DNA of 64,000 nt. Origin: Magallana gigas (Eukaryota). The stretch is taken from the NCBI RefSeq assembly GCF_963853765.1, contig NC_088855.1, forward strand, positions 20,150,001 through 20,214,000. The letters are read 5' to 3'. Made by a program: the position numbers and the translations under genes. The notes beneath the pieces were generated by a model, which saw only the letters and a list, made by a program, of their open reading frames with translations, had not been told where the DNA came from and searched no databases. Position 1 is the first letter of the stretch; every line of letters starts with the position of its first letter. This document shows, one piece after another, positions 312 to 38,634 of this stretch.

Positions 312-1531
312 ATGGGTTCCTTCATTGTTGCTGTTTCATGCCTTTTTGCTGTCATTAGCGCTCGTCCCCAATATGGAAAAGGTAAATTTAAACATTTATT
401 TTACTCTTATTAGAACTTTGATTAAAAAAATTGTTTAATAATTTTTTCCCTGTAAAATGAAGATAAAATCAAAGAGACAATTTTAATTTTTCTCTTTAAG
501 GTGGTAATGTAGGCATGTCTAACATGATGATGAACATGATGCCAGCTAACATGGGCATGAACATGATGCCAGCTAACATGGGCATGAACATGATGCCAGC
601 TAACATGGGCATGAACATGATCCCAGCTAACATGAACATGATCCCAGCTAACATGAACATGATCCCAGCTAACATGAACATGATCCCAGCTAACAGGGGC
701 ATGAATATGGTGCCAGCTAACATGGGAATGAACATGATGCCAGCCAACATGGGAATGAACATGAAGAATGGAGCAATGAACATGATGATGCCAGCTAATA
801 TGGGAATGAACATGATGCCAGCTGATATTGAAATGAGCATGCCAGCAGGTATGGGTAATAACAAAGGAGCAAATAACATGATGCCAATTGATATGGAAAT
901 GAGCATGCCAGCCGGTATGGGTAACAACAAAGGAGCAAATAACATGATGCCAATAGATATGGAAATGAGCATGCCAGCTAATATGGGTAACGGAGCAAAT
1001 AACATGCCAATGAAGGTGGAAATGGACATGCCAGCTGCTAATGGTAATAACATGGGAGCAAATAACATGATGCCAATAGATATGGAAATGAGCATGCCGG
1101 CTGGTAATGGTAACAACAAAGGAGCAATGAACACCATGATGCCAGCTAATATGGGCATGAACATGATGCCAGCTAATATGGGCATGAACATGATGATGCC
1201 AGCTAATATGGGCAACATGATGATGCCAGCTAATATGGGCAACATGATGATGCCAGCTAATATGGGCAACATGATGAACAGAGCTATGAACATGATGATG
1301 ATGCCAATGAATATGGGTATGATGAATGGTGGAAACAATGGCGGTATGCCCAATGCTATGATGGGAAACATGATGGGAGCTGGTAACAACAAAATGAAAT
1401 GTAAGTACATAGGTCATATGTCTGTACAACTGCAAAAATTTAAATAAAATGATTTTTTGCGAGTACGTGTAAAAGAAAGTATTTTCCTATGTATATTGAT
1501 GTCTTGTTTTATCATTACAGCTCTCTATTAA
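312..1531 (+). CDS. SP1: secreted Met/Asn/Pro/Gly-rich repetitive protein, 326 aa (MGSFIVAVSCLFAVISA-RPQYGKG...MMPANMGMN repeats...NNKMKSLY)
   Basis: Exons 312-381, 501-1400 and 1521-1531 all have GT-AG boundaries and phase-1 introns that join in frame. The first coding exon is a signal peptide whose ATG directly follows the acceptor AG. About one third of residues are Met. AATAAA at 1609. The non-coding first exon is probably upstream of the window. Confidence 0.85.
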
Positions 1532-3620
1532 GTTTTTAATACACCAACACACTGGATCATAGAGGAAGGACCCCGGGGATGAACTAGATTTTTTTCCATT
1601 GCACATTGAATAAAATTTGTATTCAAATTTAAACTGTTTATATTATTTTGTTTATAGTAAGGAGGGTTTAAAAATGTTTTTAATTCATTCTTTTCAAATG
1701 TGCATGTTCACTGCAATCAAAATGATACTTTCAATTCACACTTTAAATTCGGTTTTCGTTTACAAATTCATAATTTATCTCCCGTGATGCAACATGCGTT
1801 GACCTTATCTCATAGTAAAAAGAAAACATTAACCGAAACCAATATTTAAGATTAACATTGTATTATTTACAAAATATGGAAATGCTATCAAACGTATTCG
1901 GATTTAAGAAATGCTCATAGACTTGGACGTGTAGTTGTAGGAGATAATGTTGGAGGCCAATCTAAGGGTCCAGAAAGATTCTCTTATTCCTTGTGGTTGT
2001 CAAAAGATCGTTCAAAAAAGAAGTATTGTAATTGCACATTACATAATTAATGTGTCAAATGACTGATGAATCATCGTGTTGCAAATTAGAATTTGCCATT
2101 TTTCACAAGATGCCAATGTTGATAAGATTTACAACAAAGAAAACTTTGCGGTAGGTTATCATTGCCGTTTAGTAAAACATTCTTAGTAATCAATTTACGA
2201 ACTTTCCATTACACCAAATTAAGCTGTTACTTTCATCTCTCTATGAATTAAATTTAATAACATTTAAATGGAGTGCTTTTTGTCACACTCTGTGTCAATT
2301 TTTGTTCTGAATTATATTAGGTCAAAGTTGTGTGAAAGTGCAATAAACGATGTTATGTTGTCACCACTCTGAAATTTCCGTATTCTGTTTTAGTTTCCTA
2401 GCAAGTTTTAGCACGTAAGCGGAAGTAAATGCATTTGATCCTCAGCTTAGACTGATCAAAGTAAAAAAAATAATTGTTCGGGTTATTTAATAGGGTCACA
2501 AGATAAACCAAAAACTGAGATCTCATGTCATGACTCCTTGTACGCTCCATTTCATACGGTTAATGTTTACAAATGTCTTAATTTGTCGTTACGAGGGAAA
2601 CTTTAAACAGAAATTACAATGAATATGTGCTCCTAAATGCTGTTAAACTCTACATCAATGTCAAAGAAAACCTGAAGCACATTGCAAAGTCCTCCATTTT
2701 GGAGCCAAATGCTTTCAGAGGAAAGAGTGTAAAAGCCAAAAAAAAATCCTTCAAGTTTCCATACCATCATAATAATAGTAGTAAGTAAATACACGCTACA
2801 TTGTTTATACACAAAACATAAAATCTATGGGTATTTAGATCACATAAATTCCTTAGTATTTTCATAAGTACACATATTACAATTTTAAAAGATATTTTTT
2901 AATGCACGCTTTGATGCAAGCGAGTCTCACAACATCTTAAATACTAATAATTTATTGCTAAAACTGATCAAAGATTTATTTTCTTAATTGTATCCCATAT
3001 GAGGCGGATGCAGAAATGAAGGTTGAGAGTATGACACGAGTTAATAAAGCATTTTTAAAGTGTGATGCTCTGAAAGTAATGAGAGTTAAAATGTAGAGAG
3101 TTGCAGAAATTAAGAAAACATTAGCTATCCTATTCAAATATAATTGATTAAAGGTGGTTGTACGACCCAAACAGTCTGGACACTCATTTTTCATCTTCAT
3201 TACTACATTTTTGGGAGATGTTGGAGACAGGTGCCTCCTTAATCCCTTTGACTCTAGAAAGACTAGAAATTCACCAAACTTTCAAGATAAGATGACTTAT
3301 TTAATATGGTATCTTAAAACGTTATAACCCAATATCAACTCTTATATATGCTCGAACGAAAATAAATTCCTAAGCTGATCGAAATTATAACAAAACACTC
3401 TCTCCCTTCAAAAAGTTAATCAAATGTAGCATACATGTATTGCGATTGTTGCAAGATTTTCTATAAACTATAGCGTGCCAAAGATTTCTTTCTCGTTTTC
3501 TGAAGACTTGTGAGTATATTACCATAAGCTACAAAAATAACATGACATAAACTACGTATACGAAATCTAATGATGTGTAAATCGGGTTTGATGGTTTTGG
3601 CCATTTTTAGACAAACATAA

Positions 3621-4545
3621 TCTATACTACTATATTAAAATAATAGACTCGAATTTTTGGTCTTTAATACCGAGAAATCGGAAGAATACTGTCTTTTGTT
3701 TTATATATTTTAAACATCATTGGTACTTGAAGATTACCAATTTGTTTTTATTTTTTCTCAGTTAAGCTTCGCTTATTAATAGTCAACGAAAGTTACTCAA
3801 AAAATCCCGGAAATCACCTGGATTTTTTTTTGATTTTACAATCTTGCGCTTGCGCAAAACATTCACACTAACGGGATCTTTAGTTTATGTTTCCACAATA
3901 TCACATCTGCATGAATTAACTCAGAAATACGGGTAAATTTTCATTGGACTTTTGCTATATATTCTGTTCATATATATTAATGATTTCTTATGAGAGAAAG
4001 TATAAAATAACAAATATACATGTACATTTCAACTAAGTACTTACTTTTGTCTTCGTGATGACAAAAAATATTTGATTACATGCAAAAAAGTAACATTATA
4101 TTTGTTAGGAGAGTGAAGAAGATAGAATATGTCTTATCGTAAAAAATAATGTCCTACGAACTCAGTTTTACAAAGAAAATATGTGTACAGTGGTGAAAAG
4201 GTTGTTGAATTTTTCCATTCTATGGACTAAATGTGTAGTTAAAAGGTATTTGCAGTCTCAGAAAGGTTTGTTGTGATGAATTTGACTGTTATTTTCAAGG
4301 CAACTACATTTACTTTCTCCAAAAGCGTTCCGGAGCGATTCTGCAATTTTCTGCTACACTACGGGCATTCTATCTGTGGTGAGAGCCTTTCCCGAGACAC
4401 AGATTATTCAACAACAAAAAAGGAAAGTGTTGTGAAATTAATAGCATTATTGTAGGCTTATAGCTTCGTTATGTAAATGTCAAAAATAAGGTGTGTCGAT
4501 GTACCTATTTCGGAAATGTCAACCCGTGCACGGGTCAAAGTCTAG
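3621..4545 (+). mobile_element. Non-autonomous Helitron (~925 bp)
   Basis: 5' TC terminus (TCTATACTACTATATT) after an A; palindrome ACCCGTGCACGGGT at 4522-4535; 3' CTAG at 4542-4545 followed by T. These are the canonical Helitron termini and A^T insertion site. Confidence 0.8.
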
Positions 4546-5138
4546 TCTTTTTTTAAAGAAGAGAGCTGTATAAAGACATAAGAGACTTTTCACATTTTAA
4601 AGTTAAAATACTTGGATCCCCCACCCAGTAATAGTGTGACGTCCTAAAAATAAGATATGAAATTTAAAAGTTAAATTTGTAGTCTTATAAATTAAGTCAT
4701 TTTGCCAATAAACTCAAACAGGCTTTTACCAGAGTAACTGCTTACACCTTATGTATTTCAAAACGAGACATATGATGTCCGCAGGCTATATATTGAATTT
4801 TACCTGATAAGAAATTATTGTAAAATCAATTAAAAACCTAATTCCATTATAGATAAATCAGTCCTAAATAGCAAAAAGAGAGTAGGTTGGTGGACACGCT
4901 TTGGCGGATCCAAGTCAGTGGAAATTTGCATTAAAATATTTACTAACCATGAAATGATATTGAATGATTACGCAATGGGTGAATATATTTACTGGGATCT
5001 TACTTAGAATATACACCGAAGTAAAGATTATATACAAATGTTGAATAAATGAAATACGGCAATTTGTTCCTTGAACGCGCAATTTAGTATTTTGATGGAT
5101 AATGCGCTCGCGAAGCACGGCACGTGAGAGAATGGAAT

Positions 5139-5377
5139 AGAACTTTCCAGAACGGGGTAACCAAAAACGCGGAATGACTAACTAACGTCATGGCGAATGT
5201 ACATTATAGGACGATTCATCAAGCATTGCTGGCAGATACCTTGGATTGGATATCTTTGGTTAATAAAAAAGTTAATAAATATTATGGAAAAATTTGTTTC
5301 GATTTTAAATTTTGATGGAAAGAACTTTCCAGAACGGGGTACCTAGGAACGCGGGTTGACTTCTAATGTCATGGCGG
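5139..5377. repeat. Degenerate direct repeat, period ~182 bp
   Basis: AGAACTTTCCAGAACGGGGT...AACGCGG...GTCATGGCG occurs at 5139 and 5321. Confidence 0.55.
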
Positions 5378-7431
5378 AAAGTGTAAGGCTAATGAACCAT
5401 CGAACATATACTTTAGATCTGACAACTTTAGTTTTAAATATCGAAATAGATATGCATGCGCCAGCGGATTTTTTTTTTTAATTTCATATATTTCATAGCA
5501 AGACAGAATTGTAGAGTAGTAAACCTTATACATTAATGTCTAAATCATAGACGGTCTATATGAATAAATGATGTATACATTAAATGGGAAAGTTGAATTT
5601 GGGGTAGGGTGACCCCCTCCCCAGTTGTTTTTTAATTAAAACAGTTTTTTCTCCTAAATTATGTTTTTAGACAGTGGAATTTATCAAGTAAGCTGCCATA
5701 CTCCTTTTTTTGATGCTGTTGTGTTTGTATTTCAATTTAACAGAATAGGCTTAGAAAGCAATTAAGAAAACTTTTGAACAAAGGATGTACAAAAATGAAC
5801 AAAATATCCAGTTTTCGTCATATTAAACATTGTATCATATTAATGTGTACAGTGTGAATTTCCATGATTGCGCGGGATATCATCTAGTGAATGATAATTT
5901 ATTGCAGTCCAGTTTTTAGTTGGTTGACAATTTTCGATCCTAGATCACATTTATTTTATAATAATGCATTTTATATGATTATATCAGCAAAAATGTTTAC
6001 ACATTTAGAGACACAATGTCCTTTTCTACTAGTTCTGAAATTATGCAAAAAGTATGCTTTAAACTCTGGAGATTAAATAGATATTCTTTCAAAAATATAT
6101 CGTTTAATTATTTACCACAAAACATTTTTGTTTAAGGTCTTTGATAGATAAACTTTACTTATAATTAAGAGAGGATGTGATTTTTTTTTCCATTTCGCAT
6201 GTGTCAACTCATAATAAAACTGATTTTGAAGAACAAGAAAAACTACACAAATTCACATCAAATTAGAACAACTGATGACAACATCGATTGTTATAACAGA
6301 TGTCAATTTAAAAATTCATTACATTTTTATCCTTTTTAATATTTTTCAAAAGTTAATAATACATGTGATACACTTTCATCACCTACACCAGAACCTGAAA
6401 TTTGCTTATGTAGGCAAAAAACTTAAGAAAAAGGGACACTCAAAGAGTGTTCAAACAGATTGATAAGAAGGATAGATAGATGGGGGGGGGAGGTTACGAA
6501 AGTTTTTAAAAACATTTAAATTGTGTCCGTAAAATGAAATGAAACTTTAAAAAAAACTCTATTTAAATCCATTTCATTTAATTCCATTTACTTTTTTACT
6601 ATTTAATTCCATTTACAGTTTAATATATTGCAAGACACAGGAATAAATGGCCATATGCAGATTTCACTTTTTATATCATGTGGTTCAAAACTGTTTTTAT
6701 CAAAACTAAATGTATCAAAGACTTTGTTTTCATTTATATAATTCCGATAAATAATCTGAACAAGTTTTATAACTTTTTTTATTATTATCATTTTGATACA
6801 GTATTTACGGTTCATCTGTATTTATATTCAAGATGTGTTGACAAAAATGATTTAAAAGAAAAAAAAAAATTTTGGGGGGGGGGGGGTGCAATAAAATACA
6901 AACCTATGATTATAAAAATAATGTTGCATATTGAAAACAATGAACACTTTCACATAATGGTTTATGCATATTTGTATAATAATGCAAATGTTGAAAATTA
7001 ACAGTAGTAAATGCCTGCTATGATGTATGAAAATTAAAATGAAAAAATTAAACTGATTCTTTTTAGCTTCAAACTCTCTTGTCGTCATCATGGCTAAATT
7101 CTTAATGAAAAATAAAATTTGTATGTAAAAATTGTAAATCTTTACTAATAAAGTGCTAAGGATTTTTATAATAATTGATTTTTATCAAAATACAAAAGTC
7201 AGCATTTAAATTGGGCAAAAGCAATTAAAGACGTAATCGTGACGATTTGGGAGAATAAAGTCAACAATAAAAGAGGTAATGTATGTTAAGGTTGTCCCAA
7301 TTTAACAACAAACACTGCAAAATACAATGTTTGTTAAATATTTTGAACTATTTGTGTCGGATATAAAAGAAAACAAGCGTGTAAAAATGTCAAGTTCAGG
7401 TGTCAAACAACAAAATCATGTACAACGCTGT

Positions 7432-7558
7432 CCAATCCCCGCCCTTCTGCCCGGAAATTCATTGTAAACCCTAACTATATAAACCCGTCCTGGAAATCAA
7501 TTCCGTACATTGTTCCATTCCTCCTATTGGAAAGAATCAATCCACCAGTTCATCAAAG
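7432..7558 (+). promoter_or_regulatory. SP2 core promoter and non-coding exon 1
   Basis: CCAAT at 7432, GC box CCCCGCCC at 7437, ETS-like CCGGAAAT at 7451, TATATAAA at 7476, donor AAAG|GTAAGT at 7559. Confidence 0.65.
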
Positions 7559-7658
7559 GTAAGTTCGTAACTATTTATTTGCATTTTAATTCAATTCAAT
7601 CCTTATATTTACTGTTGAAGCGAACATTGCAGTATCTGTGTAAATGGTTATTTTTTAG

Positions 7659-8406
7659 ATGGCTTCTCTTTTGCGCATTGTCACCGCTGTTATGGCTGTT
7701 GCCATGGTCTGTGCCAGAGGCTATGGACCTGGTAAGTTTCATGATAATATACTGTATCTTAACAAGATACAAGATTTAAAATTTTCGTTTCAAATTAAAT
7801 ACGTAGTAATTTTATTATTATTTATCAAATACAGGTATGGGCGGTAACATGATGCCAATGGGTGGAAATATGGGCGGTAACATGATGCCCATGGGTGGTA
7901 ACATGATGCCAATGGGCGGCAACATGATGCCAATGGGTGGAAACATGATGCCAATGGGTGGAAACATGATGTCAATGGGTGGAATGGGTTCCATGGGAAA
8001 TGGAATGATGCCAATGGGTAAAATGATGAAAGCCATGATGGGTATGAATTCAATGGGATCCATGGGCAGTATGGGTGGTAACATGATGCCAATGGGTGGC
8101 AACATGATGCCAATGGGTGGAAACATGATGCCAATGGGCGGAAACATGGGCGGTATGGGAGGTAAGTTACACTAAGAGAAATAAGAACATTAGATATAGG
8201 AATAGTATGGTAATGAGATTGAACCATTTAATGACGCATGCAGTAATTCATGGATATCTTTTTTTTCTTTAAACAGGTATGTCAATGAAATGTAAGTATA
8301 ATTTAAATTATTAAACATTCTGATGCGAATTGGTACAAAAATATTTGTTGATTAGTTTTTAATTAAACGTACATCTTCTTTGTCTATTTCAGCTTCTTAC
8401 ATGTAA
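7659..8406 (+). CDS. SP2: secreted Gly/Met-rich protein with (GGNMMPM)n repeats, 142 aa, abductin-like composition
   Basis: Exons 7659-7731 (signal peptide MASLLRIVTAVMAVAMVCA-RGYGP), 7835-8161, micro-exon 8277-8291 and 8393-8406 (ends MSMKSSYM*). All introns are GT-AG phase 1. 44 Met in the 108 full codons of the repeat exon. AATAAA at 8468. Confidence 0.87.
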
Positions 8407-9934
8407 ATCTCCTTCCTGATTCCCTGGACTTTAACCAAAATGCTGCATATGTAAAATGTTAACATCAAATAAACAACTGCAATTTTACATTATTCTTTGA
8501 TTATTTGCTATCGTAGTTATCTTGGTGTACAATTATTTCTAATACCAGTGTCGAGATACTAATCTATACGGGAAGTAAAGAGGCTTTTGTGACAGAAAAA
8601 TGTAGCCGGAAAAAACTGACTTTTGATGCTTTATTTAGCAATTGCTGATAGTACATACGCATCAATAACACGTTTTGACAAAATGGAACCATATCAAGGA
8701 ACTTATATAAATAAATTTACTTTGCTTCGGCTTTATTTATCTTAGCTGTAATATAATTTTCTGTGTCATCAGCATGGAATAATTTTTGGTCGTAAGCCAA
8801 CTTATTTCATTAAATTTATAAACGGCAAAATAATATTTAAAACACCGCAAACTGTTCATATTGGGGCCCAGTTAAGGTTTTTAACCATTTCTGAATCCTA
8901 GGAAATTAAAATATCTGAAATGTTTTCTGTTTTGAATAACGTATTTGCTATATGTCTTTTTAACAAACTTTCTTATGTGAAATAAGTGTGTATGTAAAAG
9001 AGCTTAGAATTACACATAATAAAGGTGAAAAAAGAACTGATTAATACATTCATTGTTAATATGGTTGAATACAATGTATTGGTAAAAGTCTGATTGTGCA
9101 TACATCCATGAATTAACCAGAGCAATTATGTTTTAGACGTTAGGTGTTAATTTACAGCACCTATAGAACAAGAGGCCCATGGGGCCACGTCGCTCACCTG
9201 AGCAACAATGGGCGTTCAAAAGATATTGTGCCATATGGTCCCTCGGTAGAATAACAAAAAATAAATATTGTAAAGTATTCGAATTTACACTTATTTTTGC
9301 ATACACGTAATCTTTGACATTGTACCTTCATGAAATACTATTTTTTACCAGAATAAGAAAATCCTACGCAAGATATAAAACTAAACATTTGGTAGGGGTA
9401 CACTTAAGTTGTTAACTTCCAATTCCTTATTTTTTCGTTCTGCCCCCCCCCCCCCCCACTTTGTAAAGCGATCAAAATATATGAGAGCATATAGGTACAT
9501 TTTTTTCATCAACTACTTATTAGTTATTGTATTTAAAAAAATATATAATAGTTATTGTTTTATATTTAAAAAATCCTACATGTGTAGATGTGAAAAAGAA
9601 AATTGTACCTCAATGTGCTCAATTCCTCAAATTAGAAACATTCAAAAATTTAATTTGTCTTCTCCATTATAATTAAATGACCGTTATTTACCTCGCGTAC
9701 AAACCAGGATAATTTTCCGCTGTGATATTTTCTTAGGAATAGCAATAATTACTTTATCCCCGCAACAGAAATGTGTCAGAACTATGGAAACTGTTTTAAA
9801 GATGTCGTTTTTATTTACTCGTGTCTGAATAACAATCAAAATTGATGTAGATTTCACATTATTTATTGTATAAAGAGGGGGCCCCAGAGAGTAGGTATAT
9901 ACAGAATATCATTCTTTTATTTTGTTTGTACAAG

Positions 9935-11725
9935 TATTTCCAACGGAAGACCTTATAGTTTTCGTACAGTTTCTTATTATTATTTTTTTTCCATAAATTT
10001 TGTGCACGCGATTTCTCGGAAACTATCCAACCGATTTACACAATTTTTTCACAGATGATAGGAAGTGATCTGAATTTATTTTGTTTATAATATTTTTGCC
10101 GTCGTCACTTCCGGTACCGATTTATTGCTGATTTTGTCACTTTTTCGACCCATTTTGTGCACGCTTTATCTCAAAATTATCAGAGATATGAATATGAAAT
10201 TTTCAGGATAGGTAGACCATAGTCTGAAGTTGTGCCTATTGTTTTTGTTTTACGCCATTGGCGCCGTTCGTGAGAGCTCACTATGGCACGAAAATTGGGT
10301 ACGAATTTTGTTCCCCTTTTTTGTACACACAATTTCTCAGTGACGGTTCAATAGATTTTCTTGAAATTTTTAGGAGTGATAGAAATAAATTATATCTCAA
10401 GAATCCAATTTTTCATTTTTTCAAAGTTCATTTCCTGTCGTCCGTTTCCTGTCCCGCGATAACAAGCTTGTGACATTGGGATCTCAAAAATGACAAGGAT
10501 TTGAGCATTCAGACTTTGTAGGATTATAGAACTATAGTTGTAGATGTCTTTAAATTATTTTGTTTTGTTCGTCATAACTTCCGGTCGTCACCGGAAGCAT
10601 TTCAATTTTTTTTTATTTTGCATTTAATTTGTTTCATATAGAATTGAAATATAAGTAATAAACCTTACATATGTCATGTGTCCGATGTAAAAAAAATAAC
10701 CAAAAAATTCTACTTCCGGTGAGATATCTCAAATATCTCAGAAAGCGTTTTTTAAACAAATGTTTTACCCACGAAATCTCAGAGAGTCGAGTGATCAACA
10801 CACAAAACTTATATAGATAATAGACATTCGATAGATAATGCGTTTAATTGCTTTCATTTTGTCAACCGTCACTTCCGGTCCTCACCGGAAGGGTTAAAAC
10901 AAATCCAGCGGTTTGAAAGCTTAACTGTTTTCCTTGGACAATTTTAGTACAATTCATAAACAATAAAGGCCAAGTGTCTAATGTTCAAGAAACACTAAGT
11001 TTTTATTTTCACTGAGCATTTCCGTATGTCCGTTTTCTGCCAAGAGAAAAAAAAACAATGACTCTACGAGATCTGAAAAACAGTGATGATATGAACAACC
11101 ATTCTTTGTGGGATGATAGCCCTAAGTATGTATCCATGGTTTACATTATTTTGTTTGAATCGTGGTCACTTCCGGTCGTCACTGGAAGCACTTAAAAATG
11201 TTTTTTTTACATGGAATGAATACCGGTATATCATTACACGATCTTATATGTGTTAAATAAGGAAACATATTCTACTTCCGGTGAGTTATATCAAATATTT
11301 TAGGTACTTATCCTTTTTACAAATTTGATACCCGCGAGATTTTAGTCTTTGTAGGTGATTGAGACACGAACATTTATGAATGATAGACAATTGATTGAAG
11401 ATGTGTTTATCGGGTTTCTTTTTTCAACCGTCATTTCCGGTACTCACGAGAAGAGTTCATACAATTCATGATTTTAACAAGTTTAACCGATTGTTTTTGG
11501 TGTTTCATCTAGGATAATAAACAGTGATGTACACTAGGCAAATGTATACAAAAAACCTAGCTTTAGTTTTCATTAATCACTTCCGTTCGCCCGTTTCCGG
11601 TCTCGAGACAAAAAACCTAGTTTCACCAGGACCTTAGATTTTTCAGAGAGTATCGATATTTCATTGTATCGCATAAAACAAAATCGGACGGAAGACCTAA
11701 TCGTTACTTGTAACGAGATCTAGTT
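9935..11725 (+). mobile_element. Second Helentron/Helitron-type element with ~295-bp internal tandem repeats
   Basis: CGGAAGACCT motif near both ends; 3' hairpin TCGTTACTTGTAACGA followed by CTAG at 11720-11723; CACTTCCGGTC...CCGGAAG motif recurs at ~10575, ~10868 and ~11166. Confidence 0.65.
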
Positions 11726-11729
11726 AACG

Positions 11730-12300
11730 TACTCTAATTCATATAGAATTTCTAATGTTCAACCAAAATTCAGCGTCAATCGTAGAATTATAAGCAAGAT
11801 ACAGAGCTCACAGTTCGCCTAGGTTTGAGTCATATTTTTTCACATGAGTTTATTACATTCAGCTTAAGATTTTTAACTTCGTATTTCCTATTCAGCATTT
11901 AAAATGGAAAAAAAGAATGGCCCTTAGATTTTCAATTCAATTCTATTCACTCAAGACCAGTTCACTGGTATTTGAGGTTCAAAATCAGTTTATACATTTG
12001 TACAAATGTACACAAACACAGTCAAGGATCACATGTACAGTAGGAGTAATAATGACATAAAAAGGTTAAGTTTACAATACAATAAGTTGTTAAAGTTGGT
12101 TTCTGGAAGAACAGACTTTGAAAATTTTCTTTAAAAATATTGACAATTTTTTTTACTTTTTTAATCTTTAGTTTTTAAGATCTGTGTACAAACATAGAAT
12201 TGTGAGCAAATCTCTGTATCTTGCCTATAATTCGAAGCTTAACACTCAAATATGGTTAGTAAATAGAAATTGTAAACAATTAAACACAAGAAACATGCAC
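11730..12300. mobile_element. Degenerate inverted-repeat MITE remnant
   Basis: GAATTATAAGCAAGATACAGAGCTCACA at ~11783 is mirrored by TGTGAGC...CTCTGTATCTTGCCTATAATTC at ~12201. A related motif occurs at ~15697. Confidence 0.45.
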
Positions 12301-12916
12301 TATAACAAATAAAGAACACAGTTTATTTTTTCGAAATGAATCATATATATACATGTATATATACCTAGTAGACATATTTCCGTCAGCGGTATCAAACTCT
12401 ATTTAAACTGAATAAACTCGAGAAAATGCCGAGGATCTTAACAAAACCTATTGCATTAATCTACCATTACGCAAAAGATATATATAATGCCGAATTACCG
12501 ATAGAATGAATTGTATTTCAGTAGTTTTTTGATACATCAGATTTTGCTTAATTTGCGCAGGTAAACAGTTAACTGTTTGATTTACCGAAGTCTCTGTTTG
12601 ATTTGATACGTAAAAATCACGAAATACAGATGATAGTTCCCAGGTTACAAAGCATAAATAATGAAAACGAAACGTAAATCAGAACAAGCTAACACCAACG
12701 TCATGTGTGAAAACTGTCAACGCATTGAAATATTTAGCCTCAATTTACTTTACAAAATCGGCACCAATATATTTTGCATGTTTCAAAAATTTCCCTTCAT
12801 ACGCGAACTGTTGCACAACAAGCAAATTCATCATAGTCAGATCGACTCTTTTTCGTATAATGTCATGGCTGCTTTAAACAAAGAACCTCGTTTTAGAAGT
12901 ATGGAATACGAGTCTT

Positions 12917-13131
12917 GGTAAAATGGGTATGCAAACCCGGGCCGTGGCAAAATAAAAGCCGGGGCAGATCGGCAATCGTCAATTCCAAATACGCATTATT
13001 TTGCAGCAATATTTACAGCGATTACAAATATACCGGTCCATCAAATATCCTGAAATTTTAATAAGATTGGCAGATTAATAACTGCCAATATTTTGTTTTG
13101 CCCAGGCCAAGTCTTGCCTACCCATTTTACC
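12917..13131. mobile_element. MITE with ~40-bp imperfect TIRs
   Basis: GGTAAAATGGGTATGCAAA...GGCAAAATAAAA versus TTTTGTTTTGCCC...TTGCCTACCCATTTTACC. Confidence 0.55.
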
Positions 13132-13290
13132 GGATGCCGAACTCGAAGCTATTAAACTGATTGAAACACGCCTTTCCTTTTTTATTATTTTCGTAATAAC
13201 TCAGATTTGAAACAGAATTATCCCTTAATTTTTGCAATTTATGTTTTCCTTCCCATAAAGATAATTTATGCTAAACTACGTTGAATTGGA

Positions 13291-13322
<32 letters not shown>

Positions 13323-13414
13323 ATGCACCCCCTTTTTCTACAGTTTCAAGGTTTTCTCCGCTTTGAATACAGATTGGACTTTTATTTCTGCAATTTATAT
13401 TCGCCCTCCCATAA

Positions 13415-13446
<32 letters not shown>

Positions 13447-13532
13447 ACAAGCGGTTTTAGAGAAGAAGTTCAAAATGTAAAAAGTTTACAGACGGACAGA
13501 CAAACGGACGACGGATAAAATGTGATCAGAAT

Positions 13533-13565
<33 letters not shown>

Positions 13566-13683
13566 TTAAAATACTTCAGAAAAGACAAATCAGAAAAAAA
13601 CCCAATCATTATGGTGATAATTTTCATAAAAGTATATCATTAATGGTTATATATTTCTTCAGTATATTGAAGCCCATATTTAA

Positions 13684-14533: not shown

Positions 14534-14537
14534 TTAA

Positions 14538-15580: not shown

Positions 15581-15850
15581 TTAAAGGGTATGGTCACGAT
15601 TATGGTCAAAATTAATTTGTCCCTTTTTTATGTTTACAATGTTTTAGTAAGGCATTTGTAAAAGTCAAACAATATTTGAGTATCAGTCTTAAAGTTATAA
15701 ACGACATGCAGAGCTCACTACTCTGTTAAGTTTTTTTGTTCACATTTTGATGCTGAAAAAAGAAATTCCAGGTTTAGACCTAATATGAATGTAACAAACG
15801 CTAGAATCTATTTATCTAGGTTCAAAACCATTTAGTCGATAGAAAATTCA
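15581..15850. mobile_element. Truncated TTAA-type MITE
   Basis: Starts TTAAAGGGTATGGTCACGATT and shares the GCAGAGCTCAC motif with the 11730-12300 remnant. No matching right end was found. Confidence 0.35.
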
Positions 15851-17414: not shown

Positions 17415-17485
17415 TATATAAGGAAACCGTGTCTGGAAGCTTTCACGAGAATTTTATCTTCCGTCAAAATCATCCAAAACTAAAG
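17415..17485 (+). promoter_or_regulatory. SP3 TATA box and non-coding exon 1
   Basis: TATATAAG at 17415; donor AAAG|GTGAG at 17486; same spacing as SP2, SP5 and SP6. Confidence 0.6.
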
Positions 17486-17876
17486 GTGAGAATATTCAAA
17501 GGAAAAAAAAGTTATATCGTTTGTAATTATTTTAAATCTGCATAAATAAAATACTTATCTTTTGAAAGAATTATATTAGTTGCAAAGGTTTAATTAAAAT
17601 GAAGTTTGCGTATTTAATTGTACACTGTCGAGTTCAATGTTTTATACCTTTATTAAAACTATTATTGATATTGTTAACTCTCTATGTTAATAGTCAATTT
17701 ATTTTCTTTTCCCTTCTACGCATGTCAAAACGGTTATGAATTTTTAAATATTTTCTCAAAGCTGTAAATTCAGTTGATAGAATTAAGAAAGTTGTCACTG
17801 TTTTAGCTTTTAAATAATCAGTTTTTGTGTATGAAACAATGAAATTACCAATCGTTGCTATTCCTCCTCGTTTCAG

Positions 17877-19269
17877 ATGTCACCTTTCATGTCCCTTGTC
17901 GCACTGTTGTCTGTTGTGGTTACCCTGACCTTTGTCCAAGGTACGTGATTTGATGCTATTGCAATTTTCTTAACATACTAGTATATTCAATTAGTTTGAT
18001 ATGACAGTAGGACCGAAGAAATACCTCAAAATTAGTTGGTAAAATATAATTTCAAATTTTTTAAATGTTCTTAGTAACAGATGTATGCATGATTAGTTGA
18101 AGCAAAGGCAAATTGAAAAATGACACATCTTTATATTCTGAACTTTCTGAATCAATTTCTAGTTCTATATGTAGAATCATCACCTCTTGTATTTGGAACA
18201 ATTTGAGATAAATATTTTTGGACACAGTTATTGTGAATCTTATACATTGTTGTAAGTTTGTATATTTTTTTCCTATCAAAAAGAGTATCCCAGTCAGTTT
18301 CCAAATAAAGAGAGGTTTTTGAGGCAATGTTAGGTAAACTTGTTACAATAAGGGCAGTAAATAAATAATATTCTTTGCAATTGATAAAGAATCTACAGAA
18401 AACAAATAAATAGGTCATTCTGCACAAGCTTGCTTTAGTGGAAAGCTATGTCTTCTATGATATCCAATTTTCTTTTATTGGTGAAAAACAAATGAAATTC
18501 TTAGTTCACGTCAAAAATCATAAAAAATAAACAAACTCTGACACAAAAGTGTCGTTATTATCTTATTTACCACCTAAACGAATTCTCATTACATCTAGAA
18601 TTGGGTTTGAGTTTTATCGTACCTTCGAAATTAATGAACTTATTTCGATGATTACAACAGGCGCCATGGGATTTCCATATGTAAATAACGGTATGGGCAA
18701 TATGGGCATGTTGGTGATTCCTGTCGGGCGTGCAGAGGAGCCAATGAGCCCCATGATGATTGTACCAGTCATGCTGGGAAATCAGGGATCCATGATGGCT
18801 AAGACCATGATGAACATGATGCCCAAACCCATGATGCCAATGATGCCAAACTACCCCATGCCTCAGCGCATGATGATGCCCTCCGCCGCACCTGCAATGG
18901 AGAAACCAGAAATCAAAACAGATGCAGGTATTGGGCGTTTTTTTTTTTAATTTTTAATGAATAAAACACACTTTAGTGTACAATACTTTGTTATCAAGAG
19001 ATTTTGAAAACATTACAAAATAATCAGCTATCACGAAATAATTTAACAGCAAATATCTCTGAAACTATTATGGCCAAATATGGTCTCTTAATAATTTTCA
19101 ATTTGATAAAAAAAAAAAATAGGGTTTTTTTGTATTTTTGTTAATTTGTAAATTTTTTTTTAACAATAAAAATGTCTTTAAAAGATTGAGTAGATTAATC
19201 ATAAACAGTTGACTAACGTTTGTCTTCATTTCTTCTTTATTAGCTGGTAGACAGACCCTGGAGTTTTAA
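17877..19269 (+). CDS. SP3: secreted Met/Pro-rich protein, 118 aa
   Basis: Exons 17877-17940 (MSPFMSLVALLSVVVTLTFVQG), 18661-18927 (…MMNMMPKPMMPMMPNYPMPQRMMMP…) and 19244-19269 (AGRQTLEF*). Phase-1 GT-AG introns; ATG directly after the acceptor; AATAAA at 19381. Confidence 0.8.
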
Positions 19270-20322
19270 GCGTGAATTTGTTCTCCTACGTCATATTCGG
19301 ATTAAACTAATTACCGGAAATAACTTTAAAATGTTTATTTATCCCAAACTAAAGTCTGTGATACTTTACGAAAAATCTAGAATAAACGTTTTTATCTTCT
19401 TACCTGATTTTCTGGTGAATGTGTTCTATAGAAAGCATTTTGTGGTTTGTTAGAAAAAATTTAAGGTTCATTTGCACGATATCCGGCAAAAGGAACCTGT
19501 TATATAGGCAATGTAAGGTTTGAGCAAACCAGTGTCAAAATGCTTAAATTGATTCTTAATACCGCCTTATTAATAAAATAATTAAAAAGATACTAAGAAA
19601 AACTTAAAACTAAAAAATATGTAAACTTATTACAAAGTTGTCTTCCCATAAGTATTTAAACATTATTTAAGGATAAAAAGTGGTCATAATACAAATTTAT
19701 TTTCAACAACAATAGGAAGACAATATGAATACAATTCAAATGATAAGTAAGACCTAAAATCCTGGATTTAATATTGTTCTCTAAAGTTGCACAATATTCG
19801 CCTTCTCATGGACAATGCGAGCTTTGAAAATAACTGGCCGGAAACAGGTTGTTTTACAACAATTGGCGTCGATAAACGGCGTGTTTTTAGTACGTTGACG
19901 TGTTATAGGACACACGAAAAGAGTAAAACTAACGCATTTCCTATACCAAATTATCGTGTTAACATCTAAAAGACATAAAATGGAAGAGCGGGCGTCCTGT
20001 GTCCTCATCATTGGTACACGTGTATTCATTAGAGCTACAAGCCAAAATTGCGCAGCAGTTGCATGCAACACAATTTGTCACACGAAACAAAAAGTTTGTC
20101 AAACAAGAGAACTTGTGTTTGTGTGTCAAGGGTTTCAAACTGAATCATGTGGTGTTTAATAATTTTCTACGTTTCAGTGTTTATAAAAAAAAACAACTTT
20201 AAAAATGATTCAGAATGTCGTCATTTTTTTGTTATTCACAAACAGTACAAAAAAATTTACACGCTAATGATTTTAAAAACACGTATAAAATAAAGATAAT
20301 TAATTTTTAAAAAATGAAACAG

Positions 20323-21022
20323 TCAATAAATATGTATTCCAAGGCGATCATTCAGCATTAGATCTCCGACAGTAAGCAGATTTGATGGACGCCTGCGAGG
20401 CCCTACAATGGGACTTAATGGGCTCATATTCCAGTGACGAGAACTCTGCTTATACTGTCTCCCAGATGTTATTTTCCAGTATTTACTTGGTGACAATGGC
20501 GATGCTCCTAACCTCAGTCTTTGACCAGGGAAACTGGAGAGAGGTCTGTACATTCTGGTATCCATTGAAAACGGAGAAATTTCACTTCTAACAGCTATAC
20601 CTGAAAAAAAATGTTACATAAAGAAAGGGTGATTGTACTATACGGGTTCAAGTTTGCTTTGGCTCATTGGAGGATGACCGATTACGTCACGTGACCTTTC
20701 AGTGACAACTCAGGACAACGCTCCGATGACCTGTTGACGATCAATGACTGTCATGACAACCGTGTCACTAAGTTTTAAAGTGCCAATCAAGGGGCCAACG
20801 AACTTTTACGTCCGATGCCATTTTTAAGGGGGGTTAAGGAAAAATCATAAAATCAGTACTATTAAAGGTGTCAATGGCTTTAAATTTCGAATGGACATGT
20901 TGCAAATATCGTACGAAGGATTGGATGGTATATTTCTTTTAAGAACGCCTACCTGAAATAAGGGATATCAAGCAGACAGCTAGTATTGTCAGAATCCTCA
21001 CTATGTCTAGTTTTGTTGACAT
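20323..21022 (-). CDS. SP4: small secreted basic Ser/Pro/Arg-rich orphan protein, 115 aa
   Basis: Signal-peptide exon 21022-20953 (MSTKLDIVRILTILAVCLISLISG, donor G|GTAGGC) splices in phase 1 to the acceptor TTTTTTTCAG|GT at 20600. The frame is open to TGA at 20323 (ends GIHIY). Candidate non-coding exon donor GTAAGA at 21115. Confidence 0.65.
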
Positions 21023-21866
21023 GGTTTATGATATCAAACATCTACAAATGAATATTGCAAAATTATTCATTAATTGTTATCATAAAATAAAGGAAGATAT
21101 TCGTTAGTTTCTTACTTAGAATAAGTAATCTTGTCATATCATATAAAATATAATGTACAATTTTGAACATGACAGACTCTTTAAAATTGACCCTTCCTAA
21201 CATCGTCGAGATTTCGATAAGGATACCAGTAATGTAAATATATGCATTTCCTGAGATATATATGTATACATGCATTTTCTTTAATTCATTGACACAATCA
21301 TCGTGAACAAAAATGAATTTTAAATCTAATTATTTTGTCTAAATCTATTCAAGAGAAAAACATAAAAAAATATTTTAATTCATGCAGTTCAATTCTCAAT
21401 TTTACTTGAAATAGTTTAAGGAACACAGGTCTGCTTTATGGAAAAACGATGTAGAATTTTAACATTAAATGAGTTTTAGAACCTACCTGTTAATTCTTAT
21501 TCTACACAGGTAATAAAACATTTTAATCGTTCACCTTTTATATAAAACAAACAAACAAATAAATTAATGATAGATGAAGAATTAATTGACATCGTTAGGC
21601 ATGATATATACACTTTTTATTTCTTCGACAAAAAAAAAAACTTCGAATTTTTTTTCTTGCAATAAAATTTCTTCATCATTAGGTTTAATGTCCGCTCATT
21701 TGTCATTGACACAAAAATGAAGCATGAAAGACAATGTTGGAAGCAGGACGGTTGTTTATAAAATTCATAACATTGTTCTTTGAAATCAACAGGATTTGTG
21801 AGGTTTTTGACTCAAAACTACGCAATCTGTGTATATTTCACTTGAAACTTGCGACATTTTAACATT

Positions 21867-22161
21867 TTTACATTATCCAGTGTCTTTGCCTGTGATATAA
21901 GTACGTATCGATTTCGAAATATATAACCTATAACTTCAAATGACGCCAAATTGAAGCGCCAGCGGGGTTTGCTTATTAATATATAAATATTTAATCCTAC
22001 GATGGTTTAGAATTATATAAATATGAGTAATAAGGAATCATTTTGAATATTATGAGGTGATAATTTCGGTCAAATCTATCATAAAGCCGTTATTGGATTT
22101 GATCACGCCCCGACCAAAATTATCACCTCATATTACTCAAAGAATGAATCCTTATTCCTTA
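21867..22161 (+). mobile_element. Palindromic MITE-like repeat, copy A
   Basis: Self-complementary core ATAAGGAATCA...ATTATGAGGTGATAATTT...AAATTATCACCTCATA...TCCTTATT plus a ~160-bp flank. A reverse-oriented copy lies at 42070-42385. Confidence 0.7.
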
Positions 22162-23931
22162 TTTGTTGACGCAAGAAAAGGATAGTTTCATCCTACCAAA
22201 AGTCCAAGGTCTTATTAAAATGGTCCTATGTCGTTTCACCATCCATCGGACACCCTTTGATTTTTCTCTTTGATAACGCATCAATTTTAGTCCTAATATA
22301 AATAAAACTTGTTGTAAAAGTTACAGGTTTTTCCCTTTCATGAGTATTGGAGAAAGATAGTGAAAATGAATAAAGCAAATTAATGAAGTGTTGAACTACT
22401 GGTATTTCAACATGGATCGGGCAATACTATCGGACAGCTATACAGTAGAGATTAAAAATAACAAAATTTTCTGGCTTTAATGTGAAAATACAGAGGTTCG
22501 GGAAAAGAAATCTAATCAATATTGCTATTCAGATTTATTTTATTTTAAATCCTCGACATATACAGTCAGGAATTAAGACTATACTTCTTCTGTTTAAAGG
22601 AATATTTATAATGAGGTGTTTTATCGTGCCAGCGCCTATATGAACGTTGGATTAAAAAGGCAGTATCCATAAAATTCGAATTTTGAATGTTTGTATCAAC
22701 TATTTCTTAATTTTATATTTTACTATAGCCTACATTTAAAGTATATCACAAGGAATTGCTACCTAACATATTAATTATTAAAGAAGAAAAAAATCATGCA
22801 TTGAAAACTGTCCCGTGCATGGTTAATTTGTGTCCGATCCATGGTGAAATGAATATATGGAGCAAAAATGACCTTGACATCAAAACTTACTTCTTTCTAA
22901 TTTTTTAGGTAGAGGGTGCATTTTCACTAATGCACAACATTCAAATAGATCTAATGCTTTTGTGTAAAATCTTTGTTACTAAATTTTCAATGATGGTGTA
23001 TTTGACCCCATTTTACGATGCCTATTATATATACATGTAAATGTTATTTCTTTGACAACGTGACTGTCAAATTGTTAATAATGATAAAATTCATTAGTTC
23101 TAATTCATGGATATACGAAACAACACATGAGCGCATGCAGATTTTTATTTTGTATATTTTTAACCAAAGTTGTTCGATCTAAGGTATGTGTCCGATACAT
23201 GGTTAACATACTCTATATCCTACCGAAAGTGCAAGGTCTTGTTAAAATGGAAATTGTGCGGTTTTGAAAAAAAAACATTTTCACGGCCTCCTTGTCCCAA
23301 AATTATAAACACTGAGCTTTAGCAGAACTTTAATATATTTTTTAATGAAAAGATCCGTTGACAATGATTTATTTTGAAAAATTCCTGTAAGTTAAATTAT
23401 AACTACTACAAATAAACAATCAATTAACATAGCTATTAACATAGCTATGTATCATCCATATGCCTGAATAATAAATACCCATCCCCCAAAAATGAACTTT
23501 ATATATATATATTTACATTCTACTGTGTTTTTCCATTAATTTCCGTGACGTTTATATGCCTCTAAATGCAACACCTATTCACTGCGTATGAATTTACAAA
23601 TAATTTACATAAGTAGTTCTCAAACAGTGATTTCTACGTTATCGGTTAAAAATGTATTTCATAAATGTTGTCAAAACACCATGCATGTTTTATAATTATT
23701 CAACAAAACAGTTGACTTTATTGTTAAAAGCAACATTTCAGTAGTAATTTTTCATGGATTATATTTTCATGCTCGTCGAACTTATCTCAACAGTCTCTGT
23801 GATAACCAGTTTAAACCGGTTTTACAAATCAGCTGTTCTTGCTGTTACTAATTTACTCCCTCTGTGATCTGCACTTTATATCGATTTATTTAAGTAAACA
23901 ATTGATTTCTTCAGTAAGGAACGTAAATATA

Positions 23932-24088
23932 AGCATTAAATGATTCATTTTTGACGTCGTCGTGTCAATAACTGCCGTCAGGTGAGCAGACAAATTATCA
24001 TAACGCGCTAACGCGCGTTATTCAATTTGTCTGCTCACCTGACGGCAGTTATTGACACGACGACGTCAAAAATAAATCATTCAATGCT
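23932..24088. repeat. Near-perfect 157-bp inverted repeat (hairpin)
   Basis: AGCATTAAATGATTCATTTTTGACGTCGTCGTGTCAATAACTGCCGTCAGGTGAGCAGACAAATT and its reverse complement surround an inner ATAACGCGC/GCGCGTTAT stem. Confidence 0.9.
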
Positions 24089-24558
24089 ATAATAAAGTAA
24101 GTTAATCCAAAGTAAACTTTATAGTCATTTTTAGGTAAATCACTTTCATTGAACAGTTATGGTACCCTTTATTTATGTCCATTTTGAGAAGTGAGTTATC
24201 AAGATCAATTCGATCATGCTTTTAAGAATTAAGACTGCTGCGAATAACACCTTGGTTTAAATCAAAACATGAATGTCACGGAATAAGAACATGTTGTTGT
24301 TTTCATTTCATCCATATGTAAACGTAATTGCTTCTAATAGTGGTTATAAATCGCAGTACTATTCGCCTTATGATAAGACTGAACAACTACAGGGTTCAAA
24401 ATGAAGAGACATTAAACATTGCAGGGGTATTATGTAATTGCCTTATATATATGGATGATAAGATACTGCTATCAAAGATAATGCATTTCCACATGCAGTG
24501 TGTATTTCTGCGTAGTAAAAGGTTATCATTTCTTGGTCTCTATACCTTCTTGAAAGCA

Positions 24559-25413
24559 ATGGAGCTGACAACGGTCTTTCTGTTGTGGGTTCTTCTCTTG
24601 GATAAAACTGCGTTCAATAGAGCAGATTTTCAGAAGAATGCTGAAGATATTAAGTCAGAGGGAGAGATAAAAGAATATTCTGAGGCGATTATACAGAAAG
24701 TTTTAGAGGAATTTAACGTTTTGAGGGAGGAAATTGCATCGATGCGCGATACCCAACATTTGATGCAAAATGAACTCGTTGTGTTTAAAGAAAAGCTGAG
24801 TGTGAGCCTTGAACAGGGGAAGAAAATGGAACAAGATAACTTGAAGCTTCGACTTGAGAACGAAAATCTTATTAAACAGATAGAAAATATAACCTTAGAT
24901 AAAAATAGTCCAAACGAGCGCTTGAGGCATGTCGAGATGATGACCAAACGCAGTACGTTGAGTTCTTCTGCTGGACCGTCAACTACTTCCCCTGTAGCAT
25001 TTTATGCCGTGATGAATGGCAACGACATAGCCAATATCCACAACAGTCAAGTCTTGGTGTATGATAACATCCATGTCAATTCTCTAAATGCTTATAACAA
25101 ACACAACGGAAAGTTTACAGCTCCTGTAAAAGGAATATACGTTTTCTTTGCTAATGTTCTCACATTTCTAGGAAAGAAGCTGGAAGCATTAATTGTACGG
25201 AATGGCGTAAACTTCTGTAACATTTATGCTGGCGACGGAACGGGATACGGGTCTGGTTCCAATATGGCTGTGGTCGCTTTAGAAGTGGGTGATGTGGTGT
25301 GGGTCAAAGTTCACGTTCACGACCCTGGCGTTCATTTGGACGGTCCGTGGACATCGTTTTCGGGTTTTCTTCTTTATGATACATCTGAACACTGGATTCA
25401 TGTAGAACCATAA
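24559..25413 (+). CDS. Secreted coiled-coil + globular C1q domain protein (C1qDC), 284 aa, CDS uninterrupted
   Basis: Hydrophobic N-terminus (MELTTVFLLWVLLL), heptad-rich E/K/L segment, and gC1q motifs VAFYA, AY...GKFTAPVKGIYVFF, GSNMAVVALEVGDVVWV, SFSGFLL. Confidence 0.9.
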   Translation: MELTTVFLLWVLLLDKTAFNRADFQKNAEDIKSEGEIKEYSEAIIQKVLEEFNVLREEIASMRDTQHLMQNELVVFKEKLSVSLEQGKKMEQDNLKLRLENENLIKQIENITLDKNSPNERLRHVEMMTKRSTLSSSAGPSTTSPVAFYAVMNGNDIANIHNSQVLVYDNIHVNSLNAYNKHNGKFTAPVKGIYVFFANVLTFLGKKLEALIVRNGVNFCNIYAGDGTGYGSGSNMAVVALEVGDVVWVKVHVHDPGVHLDGPWTSFSGFLLYDTSEHWIHVEP

Positions 25414-37418: not shown

Positions 37419-37915
37419 TTTGACTTAAGAATAATTGGTCTTTGCTAAAAACCACTAAATCAAGTTCTCTCTGTTCTCTGATATCTTTTGTTTTCAAAAT
37501 CATCATCTAGATTCTTATATATTTCCTGAAAACTATGCATCATTGATCCCAAAACCAAGATGAATTGACAAGTGGTCAACTGTACTTGTGTGTCCCTGTT
37601 TCGGACCTCTCAAACTCTTTGTCCTGTCCTTAACTGTTTATTTGCCGTATACTTTATCTACATACATCATAGTCTATTCAATGTTCGAATGGGACCCATT
37701 CCGACATTTATTAGTTGTTTATTGTTTTCATGTCAGGAATGTTATAAATCAATGAAAAGTATATGGTCATTTGTAAATTTTATGGTTTATCATTGTGTAA
37801 AAAAAAGGGGGTAATCAATTACAGTTGTACGGTATATAATAAGATTAAATTTCAAATTACTGATTTGATCGGTGACATTTCTGCTAATCACGACGATGCC
37901 ATTTCATTTCGTCTA

Positions 37916-38634
37916 ATGGCTGTCCTGTGGGTTCTTCTCGTGTTACAAATTGGTTCTTTATCATGGTGCTACAGTTACAGTAAGTCGCTGGGATATCGTC
38001 TTCTGTTACTAAGCAAATGAATGGATATAAATCATTTAAGTATTGTGACTGTTGTTTGTATCTTATTTGCAGACGACGGCAATGCAGAGAACACACTGAG
38101 CATGCCTGAATCAAGCATTGGCAACCTACTGATGCCAGCAGACCTGTTGCAGAAGGCGGCCATTCTTCCCGCCAAAACTCAAATCTTCCAAGCCAACATC
38201 AACTCTGACGAGGCGTTGTCTCTGATGGCGGATCTTTTCTACCCCAAGGACTTCACGATGACCTCCCTCACCACCATTATCATCGACCATCGTCAGTCCA
38301 TCCCCAAGCTCTTCCCGAAAAAGCTTGCTGTCCCAGGAGCTAAACAGTTCGCTTTAGGAGGTACGTGTTCCTAATTGTACATCAAATCGATATATCGCTG
38401 CAGTTATTGAATAAGTTCAACATCATATATACACCTTATGCCCTGGGTTTGTTTTTTCGCATGTTATAAGCGACTTTAAATATAGTAAATAATATCTGAC
38501 ATAATATCTGCGAATTAACTATTGTATTTTTTGCAAAAAACTGAATAAACAGATACACGTTTTTATTGTGTTGCACCCGTTTTATTTTATCATTTAAAAA
38601 AAATTATTTTCTTTATAATGTAGATGACCAGTGA
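37916..38634 (+). CDS. SP8: small secreted orphan protein, 120 aa, not Met-rich
   Basis: Exons 37916-37979 (MAVLWVLLVLQIGSLSWCYSY), 38073-38360 and 38624-38634 (DDQ*). Phase-1 GT-AG introns; TATATAAT at 37833; ATTAAA at 38686. Confidence 0.7.

Follow-up and report, generated by a model that had tools for sequence, protein, structure and literature searches.

A tandem array of methionine-rich, probably secreted matrix-protein genes in the oyster Magallana gigas, with the hinge ligament as a candidate destination

A 64,000-nt stretch of Magallana gigas contig NC_088855.1 (the window; position 1 corresponds to 20,150,001 and negative values lie upstream; G+C content ~33%) carries six genes for methionine (Met)-rich proteins, each with a signal-like first coding exon. 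With 80 kb of neighbouring DNA upstream and 40 kb downstream taken in, the Met-rich array reaches beyond the window, upstream to about -35.4 kb, and totals 13 genes over ~73 kb (about -35.4 kb to +37.4 kb, frames checked). The cluster in the window is the right-hand half of this 13-gene tandem array, which belongs to the oyster lineage. By analogy with known proteins, its Met-rich products probably belong to a secreted structural matrix, for which the hinge ligament is the leading, if tentative, destination. The first-pass annotation had proposed eight like secreted-protein genes (SP1 to SP8): the six Met-rich ones (SP1, SP2, SP3, SP5, SP6 and SP7) stand, while no SP4 was found and SP8 proved not to be low-complexity.

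A six-frame scan of the whole window for stop-free frames with at least 10% Met yielded six Met-rich exons (plus strand, 500-1444, 7810-8172 and 18531-18947; minus strand, 27175-27981, 32824-33609 and 36584-37255), besides opposite-strand frames of the same exons and one 52-aa frame. Scanning for hydrophobic peptides that start at ATG and end at a GT donor placed a phase-1 signal-like exon before each of the six, as predicted (plus strand, 312-381, 7659-7731 and 17877-17940 for SP1 to SP3; minus strand, 28132-28054, 33753-33675 and 37418-37352 for SP5 to SP7), as well as at the start of SP8 (37916-37979, plus strand). When the signal exon is joined to a frame-restoring, pyrimidine-rich acceptor, all Met-rich models of the window give intact open reading frames (ORFs) of 117-338 aa. 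SP1 (312..1447, plus strand; 338 aa) has a Met/Asn/Gly repeat exon (501-1447) and ends a tandem series of six SP1-family paralogs, of which five, like the TATA box of SP1, lie upstream of the window. SP2 (7476..8175, plus strand; 137 aa) has a TATA box at 7476-7483, a putative non-coding exon ending at ~7549 and a repeat exon (7835-8175) built of MGGNMMP heptads. SP3 (17415..18950, plus strand; 117 aa, M/P/G-rich in one-letter code) has a TATA box at 17415-17422, a putative non-coding exon ending at 17485 and a terminal exon at 18661-18950. The M/S/T-rich SP5 (27172..28349, minus strand; TATA box 28349-28342; 279 aa) also has a putative non-coding exon, and its terminal exon (27932-27172) encodes a conserved central block and a Tyr-rich C-terminus that includes the terminal peptides IPKSIKYYK and NKFGYSKYY singled out at first pass. 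Its tandem paralog SP6 (32821..33974, minus strand) has a TATA box at 33974-33967 and a terminal exon at 33554-32821; in SP7 (36581..37521, minus strand; 238 aa) these are at 37521-37514 and 37230-36581. Of the six canonical TATA boxes claimed, five (SP2, SP3, SP5, SP6 and SP7) are inside the window and that of SP1 is just upstream of it. SP8 (37916..38634, plus strand; 120 aa) consists of exons 37916-37979, 38073-38360 and 38624-38634. For SP4, neither the signal-exon scan nor the ORF lists contain a signal exon followed by a low-complexity exon in 18950-27170, where the only secreted gene encodes a C1q-domain protein (see below).

RNA contigs of three public runs, from three studies, were aligned to 32800-38700 and cover the modelled exons only, with zero depth over the spacers. 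The spliced transcripts asked for by the first-pass annotation are present, with exact joints at 33554/33675 (SP6), 37230/37352 (SP7) and 37979/38073 (SP8), in two runs each and all GT..AG on the gene's own strand; a loose contig end at 38360 goes on with the first letters of SP8 exon 3 (38624). The RNA thus bears out transcription and the modelled splicing for SP6, SP7 and SP8. Models of SP1, SP2, SP3 and SP5 are predictions from sequence, paralogy and orthology; for SP1 and SP2, RNA-type runs contain 13-16% of the words of 250-8350, roughly the exonic share. One RNA contig of run X1 extends 10 nt beyond the SP8 exon-2 donor (38361-38370), followed by 84 letters unmatched in the aligned stretch, a tail for which an alternative 3' exon or a divergent allele may account. 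Logan contigs encoding SP7- and SP8-like proteins (SRR6063434, SRR6063077 and SRR14864884-SRR14865118) were rejected as tissue evidence, being collinear with unspliced genomic DNA and so derived from DNA runs, some of them from a relative ~90% identical.

Upstream of the window, ORFs and spliced models define a 247-aa M/N/S gene (M240), an 845-aa M/G/P gene on the minus strand (M830) and the five remaining SP1-family paralogs, at about -26, -22, -16, -9 and -4 kb; no further Met-rich genes are found to the right of SP8 within the 65 kb examined. In all 13 genes a phase-1 intron separates a short signal-peptide exon from one large terminal exon, and a TATA-like box lies 100-760 bp upstream of the ATG (13/13). 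In 11/13 the acceptor AG directly abuts the ATG, which together with the upstream TATA box points to a non-coding exon 1 and an exon 2 that starts at the ATG. In the SP1 family, SP2 and the 845-aa gene, the signal exons also share their end, with Tyr-Gly just past the predicted cleavage site. This common gene plan and the like signal-exon ends suggest that the genes descend from a single signal-exon cassette, the repeat exon having turned over since.

Met accounts for 32% of mature SP1, 38% of SP2, 24% of SP3, 24% of SP5, 25% of SP6 and 11% of SP7. Pooled, the mature proteins contain M 23%, N 17%, G 12%, A 10%, P 9% and S 8%, acidic residues (D plus E) make up 2.2%, and Cys, His and Trp are nearly absent. 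All tandem periods keep the frame (multiples of 3): SP1 has 21, 27 and 66 nt, SP2 has 21 nt, and SP5 and SP6 have 30 nt. Most of the Met-rich proteins have Tyr among the first few mature residues, and their C-termini are rich in Tyr/Phe/Lys or, in the SP1 family, carry a single Cys in an MKCK tail. Judged by composition, the products fall into at least four classes without sequence relation, in agreement with the differing Met partner alphabets first described: M/N/A/G (SP1 family, six copies), M/G/N/P (SP2 and the 845-aa gene), M/P/G (SP3) and M/S/T (SP5 to SP7). The 240-aa upstream product (M240) is unrelated to SP5 or SP7 by BLASTP. Within the SP1 family (N 21-34%, M 16-32%, G 9-12%), copies at about -26 and -22 kb stop right after MKCK and the -4 kb copy is two residues longer, while SP1 and the copies at about -16 and -9 kb have 8-30 more residues beyond MKCK, where either a stop was lost or a splice is unrecognised. 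The copies at about -9 and -4 kb have just 16% Met and may be decaying.

On alignment, SP5, SP6 and SP7 make up a single family whose core is conserved and non-repetitive. The alignments show the central block DA..AM.TG..MPV...M..SP..R..LS.M together with a C-terminal tail of aromatic character; SP6 has 94% amino acid identity to SP5 with a 9-codon repeat indel, and SP7 is a diverged member (SP5 vs SP7, BLASTP E=2e-7). A profile of the family finds just these three local copies in the genome. The claim that the proteins hold no recognisable folded domain agrees with Pfam, which returned no family for any Met-rich protein or SP8, and with the AlphaFold model of SP5 (mean predicted local distance difference test score, pLDDT, 44), but has to be qualified for the conserved core of SP5 to SP7, the only part of the SP5 model with helices, themselves weak. 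SP8 has an ordinary composition and is neither Met-rich nor low-complexity; its AlphaFold model is of low confidence (pLDDT 52), with three short helices.

SP5 and SP6 arose by tandem duplication, 26189-29896 (SP5) matching 32182-35188 (SP6) with ~95% identity over gene and promoter (by eye) and ~80% in the outer parts. A 27-nt repeat indel and scattered substitutions set the copies apart, the right part of the duplication does not extend into SP7, and a single SP5/6 copy is present in the Crassostrea virginica and Saccostrea regions examined. An assembly gap (N; 31791..31935) is intergenic, falling within the 4.5 kb that separate the SP5 TATA box (28349) from the SP6 stop (32821), and leaves the exons and introns of all models untouched; the left boundary of the SP6 duplication unit is 247 bp from it, and homology stops before the gap. 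Haplotigs or a false duplication were rejected as the source of SP5/SP6 on account of the ~5% divergence, the indel and the visible duplication boundaries short of the gap. The gap is unfilled, and the modelled spacing and copy number across it are provisional. A tandem repeat at 30000-31040, with periods of ~130, 163 and 293 nt (90-95% alike), is 750 bp from the gap and may be its cause. (CT)n microsatellites (29036-29106 and 34660-34719) occupy matching places upstream of SP5 and SP6 within the duplicated unit, and aligned reads are reported as cut at the second of these.

Synteny, proposed as a check at first pass, is found in two other oyster genera. In C. virginica, an SP5/6-like gene, SP7, SP8, MTP18, stathmin and RPA1 follow in the same order and orientation, and in Saccostrea cucullata an SP3 ortholog adjoins an SP5-like gene, the two convergent as in the window and followed by SP7-like and SP8 genes, so that SP3, SP5/6, SP7 and SP8 are all syntenic there with order and orientation kept. 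SP7 is 95% identical to C. gigas XP_011437855.1, annotated as 'uncharacterized protein LOC105335596', and for SP8 the identity is 88% with C. virginica LOC144626249 and 53% with S. cucullata LOC134254533. A ~40-residue block (LLRDAAQLAM...TVLSMMS) is identical between SP5 and its Saccostrea ortholog, proteins that are 46% identical overall; among orthologs, the termini and central block are conserved while the number and sequence of repeats vary. The orphan status first assigned to the proteins holds, with no relatives found outside oysters for the cluster's Met-rich proteins: a profile search of 1.84 billion representative proteins with SP5/6/7 returned oyster sequences only, a homology search with SP1 gave 2810 word candidates and 0 significant matches, and searches of the ESM Atlas produced no usable match for SP1, SP2 or SP8.

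The array had also been taken for a single co-regulated unit, which its promoters and the run data do not bear out. CCGGAAA (an ETS-type core) stands 19-22 nt before the TATA box in the 247-aa gene M240, SP1e, SP1d, SP1c, SP1 and SP2 (sites at -35638, -26711, -22685, -16497, -476 and, for SP2, 7451, with the TATA box reaching to 7483), and of the 30 places where the heptamer occurs in 184 kb, 6 are these TATA-paired sites. The module is degenerate in the Met-poorer SP1a and SP1b and absent from SP3, SP5, SP6, SP7 and the 845-aa gene M830. The pairing, which is fixed in position, was picked out by inspection; k-mer enrichment, compared across seven promoter groups, did not exceed that in random controls. 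Between the 14 RNA-type runs that best represent 250-8350 (X25-X38) and the 14 that represent 32800-38700 (X1-X14; this list extends down to a share of 0.07) there is zero overlap. The restriction of the CCGGAAA-TATA module to part of the genes and the disjoint run sets of SP1/SP2 and SP6 to SP8 together suggest, indirectly, at least two regulatory modules.

SP7 and SP8 are divergent (37352-37979), with start codons ~500 bp apart, and both are found in runs X1 and X5; the pairing is kept in C. virginica and Saccostrea, and the two genes may have a common bidirectional promoter. At 28452-28568 and 34076-34192, 100-220 bp upstream of the SP5 and SP6 TATA boxes, ~115 nt can be aligned with C. virginica (5389-5505 of its stretch) while the surrounding spacer cannot, making this a candidate conserved enhancer.

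The Met-rich proteins of the window combine a predicted signal peptide with a repetitive low-complexity body, as do the repetitive low-complexity matrix proteins of shell and ligament. In Pinctada, the ligament fraction that acid and detergent leave insoluble consists chiefly of the ligament Met-rich protein LMP, a long array of MMMKPD hexapeptides, and of a second protein whose tail is M/N/G-rich (PMC7591529), and the ligament proteins are without acid-rich regions, unlike the Met-rich nacre and prism proteins of the same genus (PMC7591529). The hinge ligament is favoured as the destination of the oyster proteins because their composition matches these two insoluble ligament proteins, without the acidic blocks of the shell-layer Met-rich proteins. 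Like the Pinctada ligament proteins, they are predicted to be secreted, extremely Met-rich and free of acid-rich blocks, with Tyr near the ends; the former come from an insoluble cross-linked matrix, whereas for the oyster proteins the ligament is a putative location. The likenesses are compositional only: LMP, where Met is partnered by P/K, compares with SP3, which has MMPKPMMP-like stretches but no array, and the tail of the second ligament protein, where Met is partnered by N/G, compares with the SP1 family, which by eye only looks like the M/N/G-rich C-terminal region of pfu_aug1.0_1662.1_66071.t1 (PMC7591529, supplement Fig. S3B). SP2 is a small secreted Gly/Met repeat protein with Tyr near its N-terminus and in this resembles abductin of the scallop Argopecten irradians, the major protein of the inner hinge ligament and a compressive elastomer that contains Met and carries Tyr at the ends (PMC9999432); by this analogy it is plausibly a random-coil elastomer. 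Abductin, however, is built of tandem GGFGGMGGGX decapeptides, with Gly at ~58%, Pro at ~1%, and 2 Cys and 2 Tyr in an Ala-rich N-terminal domain (PMC9999432), whereas SP2 has 7-aa (21-nt) MGGNMMP repeats and its mature form contains G 32%, M 38% and P 9%, with 1 Tyr, 0 Cys and no Phe. The first-pass comparison with abductin and LMP carries over for the non-acidic M/N/G/P and M/P/K compositions, which resemble those of the Pinctada ligament proteins, and not for sequence membership.

Two further comparisons concern the proteins and their arrangement. MRNP34, NU-5 and P,NU-5 of Pinctada likewise hold Met-rich low-complexity regions within secreted matrix proteins, but combine them with Asp-/Glu-rich regions or other domains, while the oyster proteins are near acid-free and consist of repeats only. 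Tandem clusters of fast-evolving genes for secreted, disordered matrix proteins are also formed by the vertebrate SCPP genes and by the pearl-oyster shematrin/KRMP-type arrays, and the oyster locus shares with these the tandem array, a non-coding exon 1 (putative in the oyster genes) followed by a short signal exon, fast turnover of the low-complexity exon and lineage-specific duplications; it differs in phylum, intron phase and composition.

The Met-rich proteins would be secreted by the mantle epithelium, the terminal exon of each gene supplying an intrinsically disordered, almost acid-free, Met-rich repeat polymer. Cross-linking would involve the conserved ends, through the N-terminal Tyr, the Tyr/Phe/Lys-rich C-termini and, in the SP1 family, the Cys of the MKCK tail, and the flexible, thioether-rich repeats would form a hydrated, non-mineral-nucleating elastomeric or framework matrix. 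From the sequences, we infer in these reactive ends and the mobile disordered middle the design of a cross-linkable elastomer or framework.

Several points weigh against a secreted, ligament-directed material. The signal peptides were called by eye and by a hydrophobicity rule alone. Pooled Gly, at 12%, is below the level of ligament hydrolysates. A back-translated two-unit MMMKPD pattern, allowing up to 2 mismatches, has no match in the whole genome, SP2 shows none of the abductin sequence features tested, and by sequence the window proteins are not members of abductin or LMP, so that the likenesses drawn above are not homology. No reads on the locus were found in a raw polyA run (X21) sampled at ~1%, which is no test of expression, and the run sets of the two ends of the window are disjoint, as described. 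Finally, Met-rich proteins are reported from the shell layers of Pinctada (nacre and prism) and of Mytilus (nacre, myostracum and fibrous prism; PMC4517812, PMC7591529), and Gly-/Met-rich, repetitive low-complexity proteins mark the larval shell-field cells of a limpet (bioRxiv 10.1101/2024.05.16.592602).

These last reports underlie two other destinations for a structural matrix. The proteins could be framework proteins of adult shell layers or periostracum, forming an insoluble scaffold for foliated, prismatic or chalky layers, with the mantle edge or pallium, and not the isthmus, as the secreting tissue. In Pinctada, Met-rich proteins are the main component of insoluble nacre and prism fractions (PMC7591529), and transcripts turn up across many independent studies, which is easier to obtain from the large mantle than from the small isthmus; set against this, the Met-rich shell-layer proteins of Pinctada have Asp-/Glu-rich blocks where the oyster proteins have hardly any acidic residues, and Pfam finds no chitin-binding or other shell-matrix domain, making this destination unlikely. 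Larval matrix proteins (shell field, prodissoconch or larval hinge), made mainly in trochophore and veliger, would accord with the limpet cells and with the separate SP1/SP2 and SP6 to SP8 run sets, which would fit stage-specific sub-clusters, but the limpet likeness is one of description, and we regard this as rather improbable. A non-structural role, as secreted Met-thioether proteins that bind Cu(I)/Ag(I) or scavenge oxidants in a metal-hyperaccumulating animal, is very unlikely: the proteins have dense MxM, MMP and MxxM motifs and nearly no Cys or His, and MxM and MMxM motifs serve Cu(I) in Ctr1 and bacterial copper-resistance proteins, yet the repeat polymers, the conserved Tyr/Lys termini and the ligament parallels fit a material better. 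Chance ORFs in coding-like satellite DNA, or an assembly duplication at the gap, to which the low-complexity repetitive sequence and the N gap between SP5 and SP6 might point, are refuted by the stop-free frames of 96-830 codons in 33% GC DNA, the spliced RNA, the orthologs in two other genera, and the ~5% difference, indel and duplication boundaries of SP5/SP6.

The hinge-ligament reading can be carried further, to a 73-kb array that is the complete, co-located toolkit of an oyster Met-based hinge elastomer, all of it derived from a single signal-exon cassette. It would parallel, in an invertebrate, the SCPP cluster of vertebrates and comprise two differently regulated modules for the two ligament layers. 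An M/N/G/P module with the CCGGAAA-TATA promoter would then stand beside an M/S/T module, SP5 to SP7, paired with SP8. In this full form the proposal is doubtful.

SP8 marks the right-hand edge of the cluster. Beyond it, genes for MTP18-like (minus strand), stathmin-like (plus strand) and RPA1-like (minus strand) proteins (41725..48803) lie outside the cluster in the order found in C. virginica, and MTP18 and stathmin keep this order in Saccostrea as well; by this gene order, the conserved neighbours set the right edge across three oyster genera. Amid the Met-rich array, a gene on the plus strand (24559..25413) has one coding exon without intron and encodes a coiled-coil plus C1q-domain protein with a signal-like start (Pfam PF00386, E=2.4e-20, full-length match 1-127 of 127), which is neither Met-rich nor low-complexity. 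No counterpart was noticed in the C. virginica stretch examined, and the gene may be a lineage-specific insertion.

Met-rich ligament or shell proteins and tandem matrix-gene arrays are kinds already known, and this locus was not found described: the searchable literature, which most subscription journals lie outside, holds no account of it, of Crassostrea ligament proteins or of LOC105335596. The locus may help explain why such proteins go unnamed in the oyster shell literature searched. Few Lys/Arg are available to trypsin (3 in the 206-residue mature SP1e), low-complexity filters remove the Met-rich proteins of the cluster from homology searches, and the one identified C. gigas ortholog is annotated as 'uncharacterized', all of which may perhaps account for the missing names. 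Met-rich extracellular proteins are the least understood class of bioelastomer or framework protein, with abductin and Pinctada LMP the only sequences tied to ligament and an unknown cross-linking chemistry. With thirteen natural variants of a single gene plan, in which the ends are conserved and the repeats vary freely, the locus offers a comparative series for the role of Met, with chain mobility, redox-tunable stiffness through Met sulfoxide and sulfilimine cross-links as candidate contributions.

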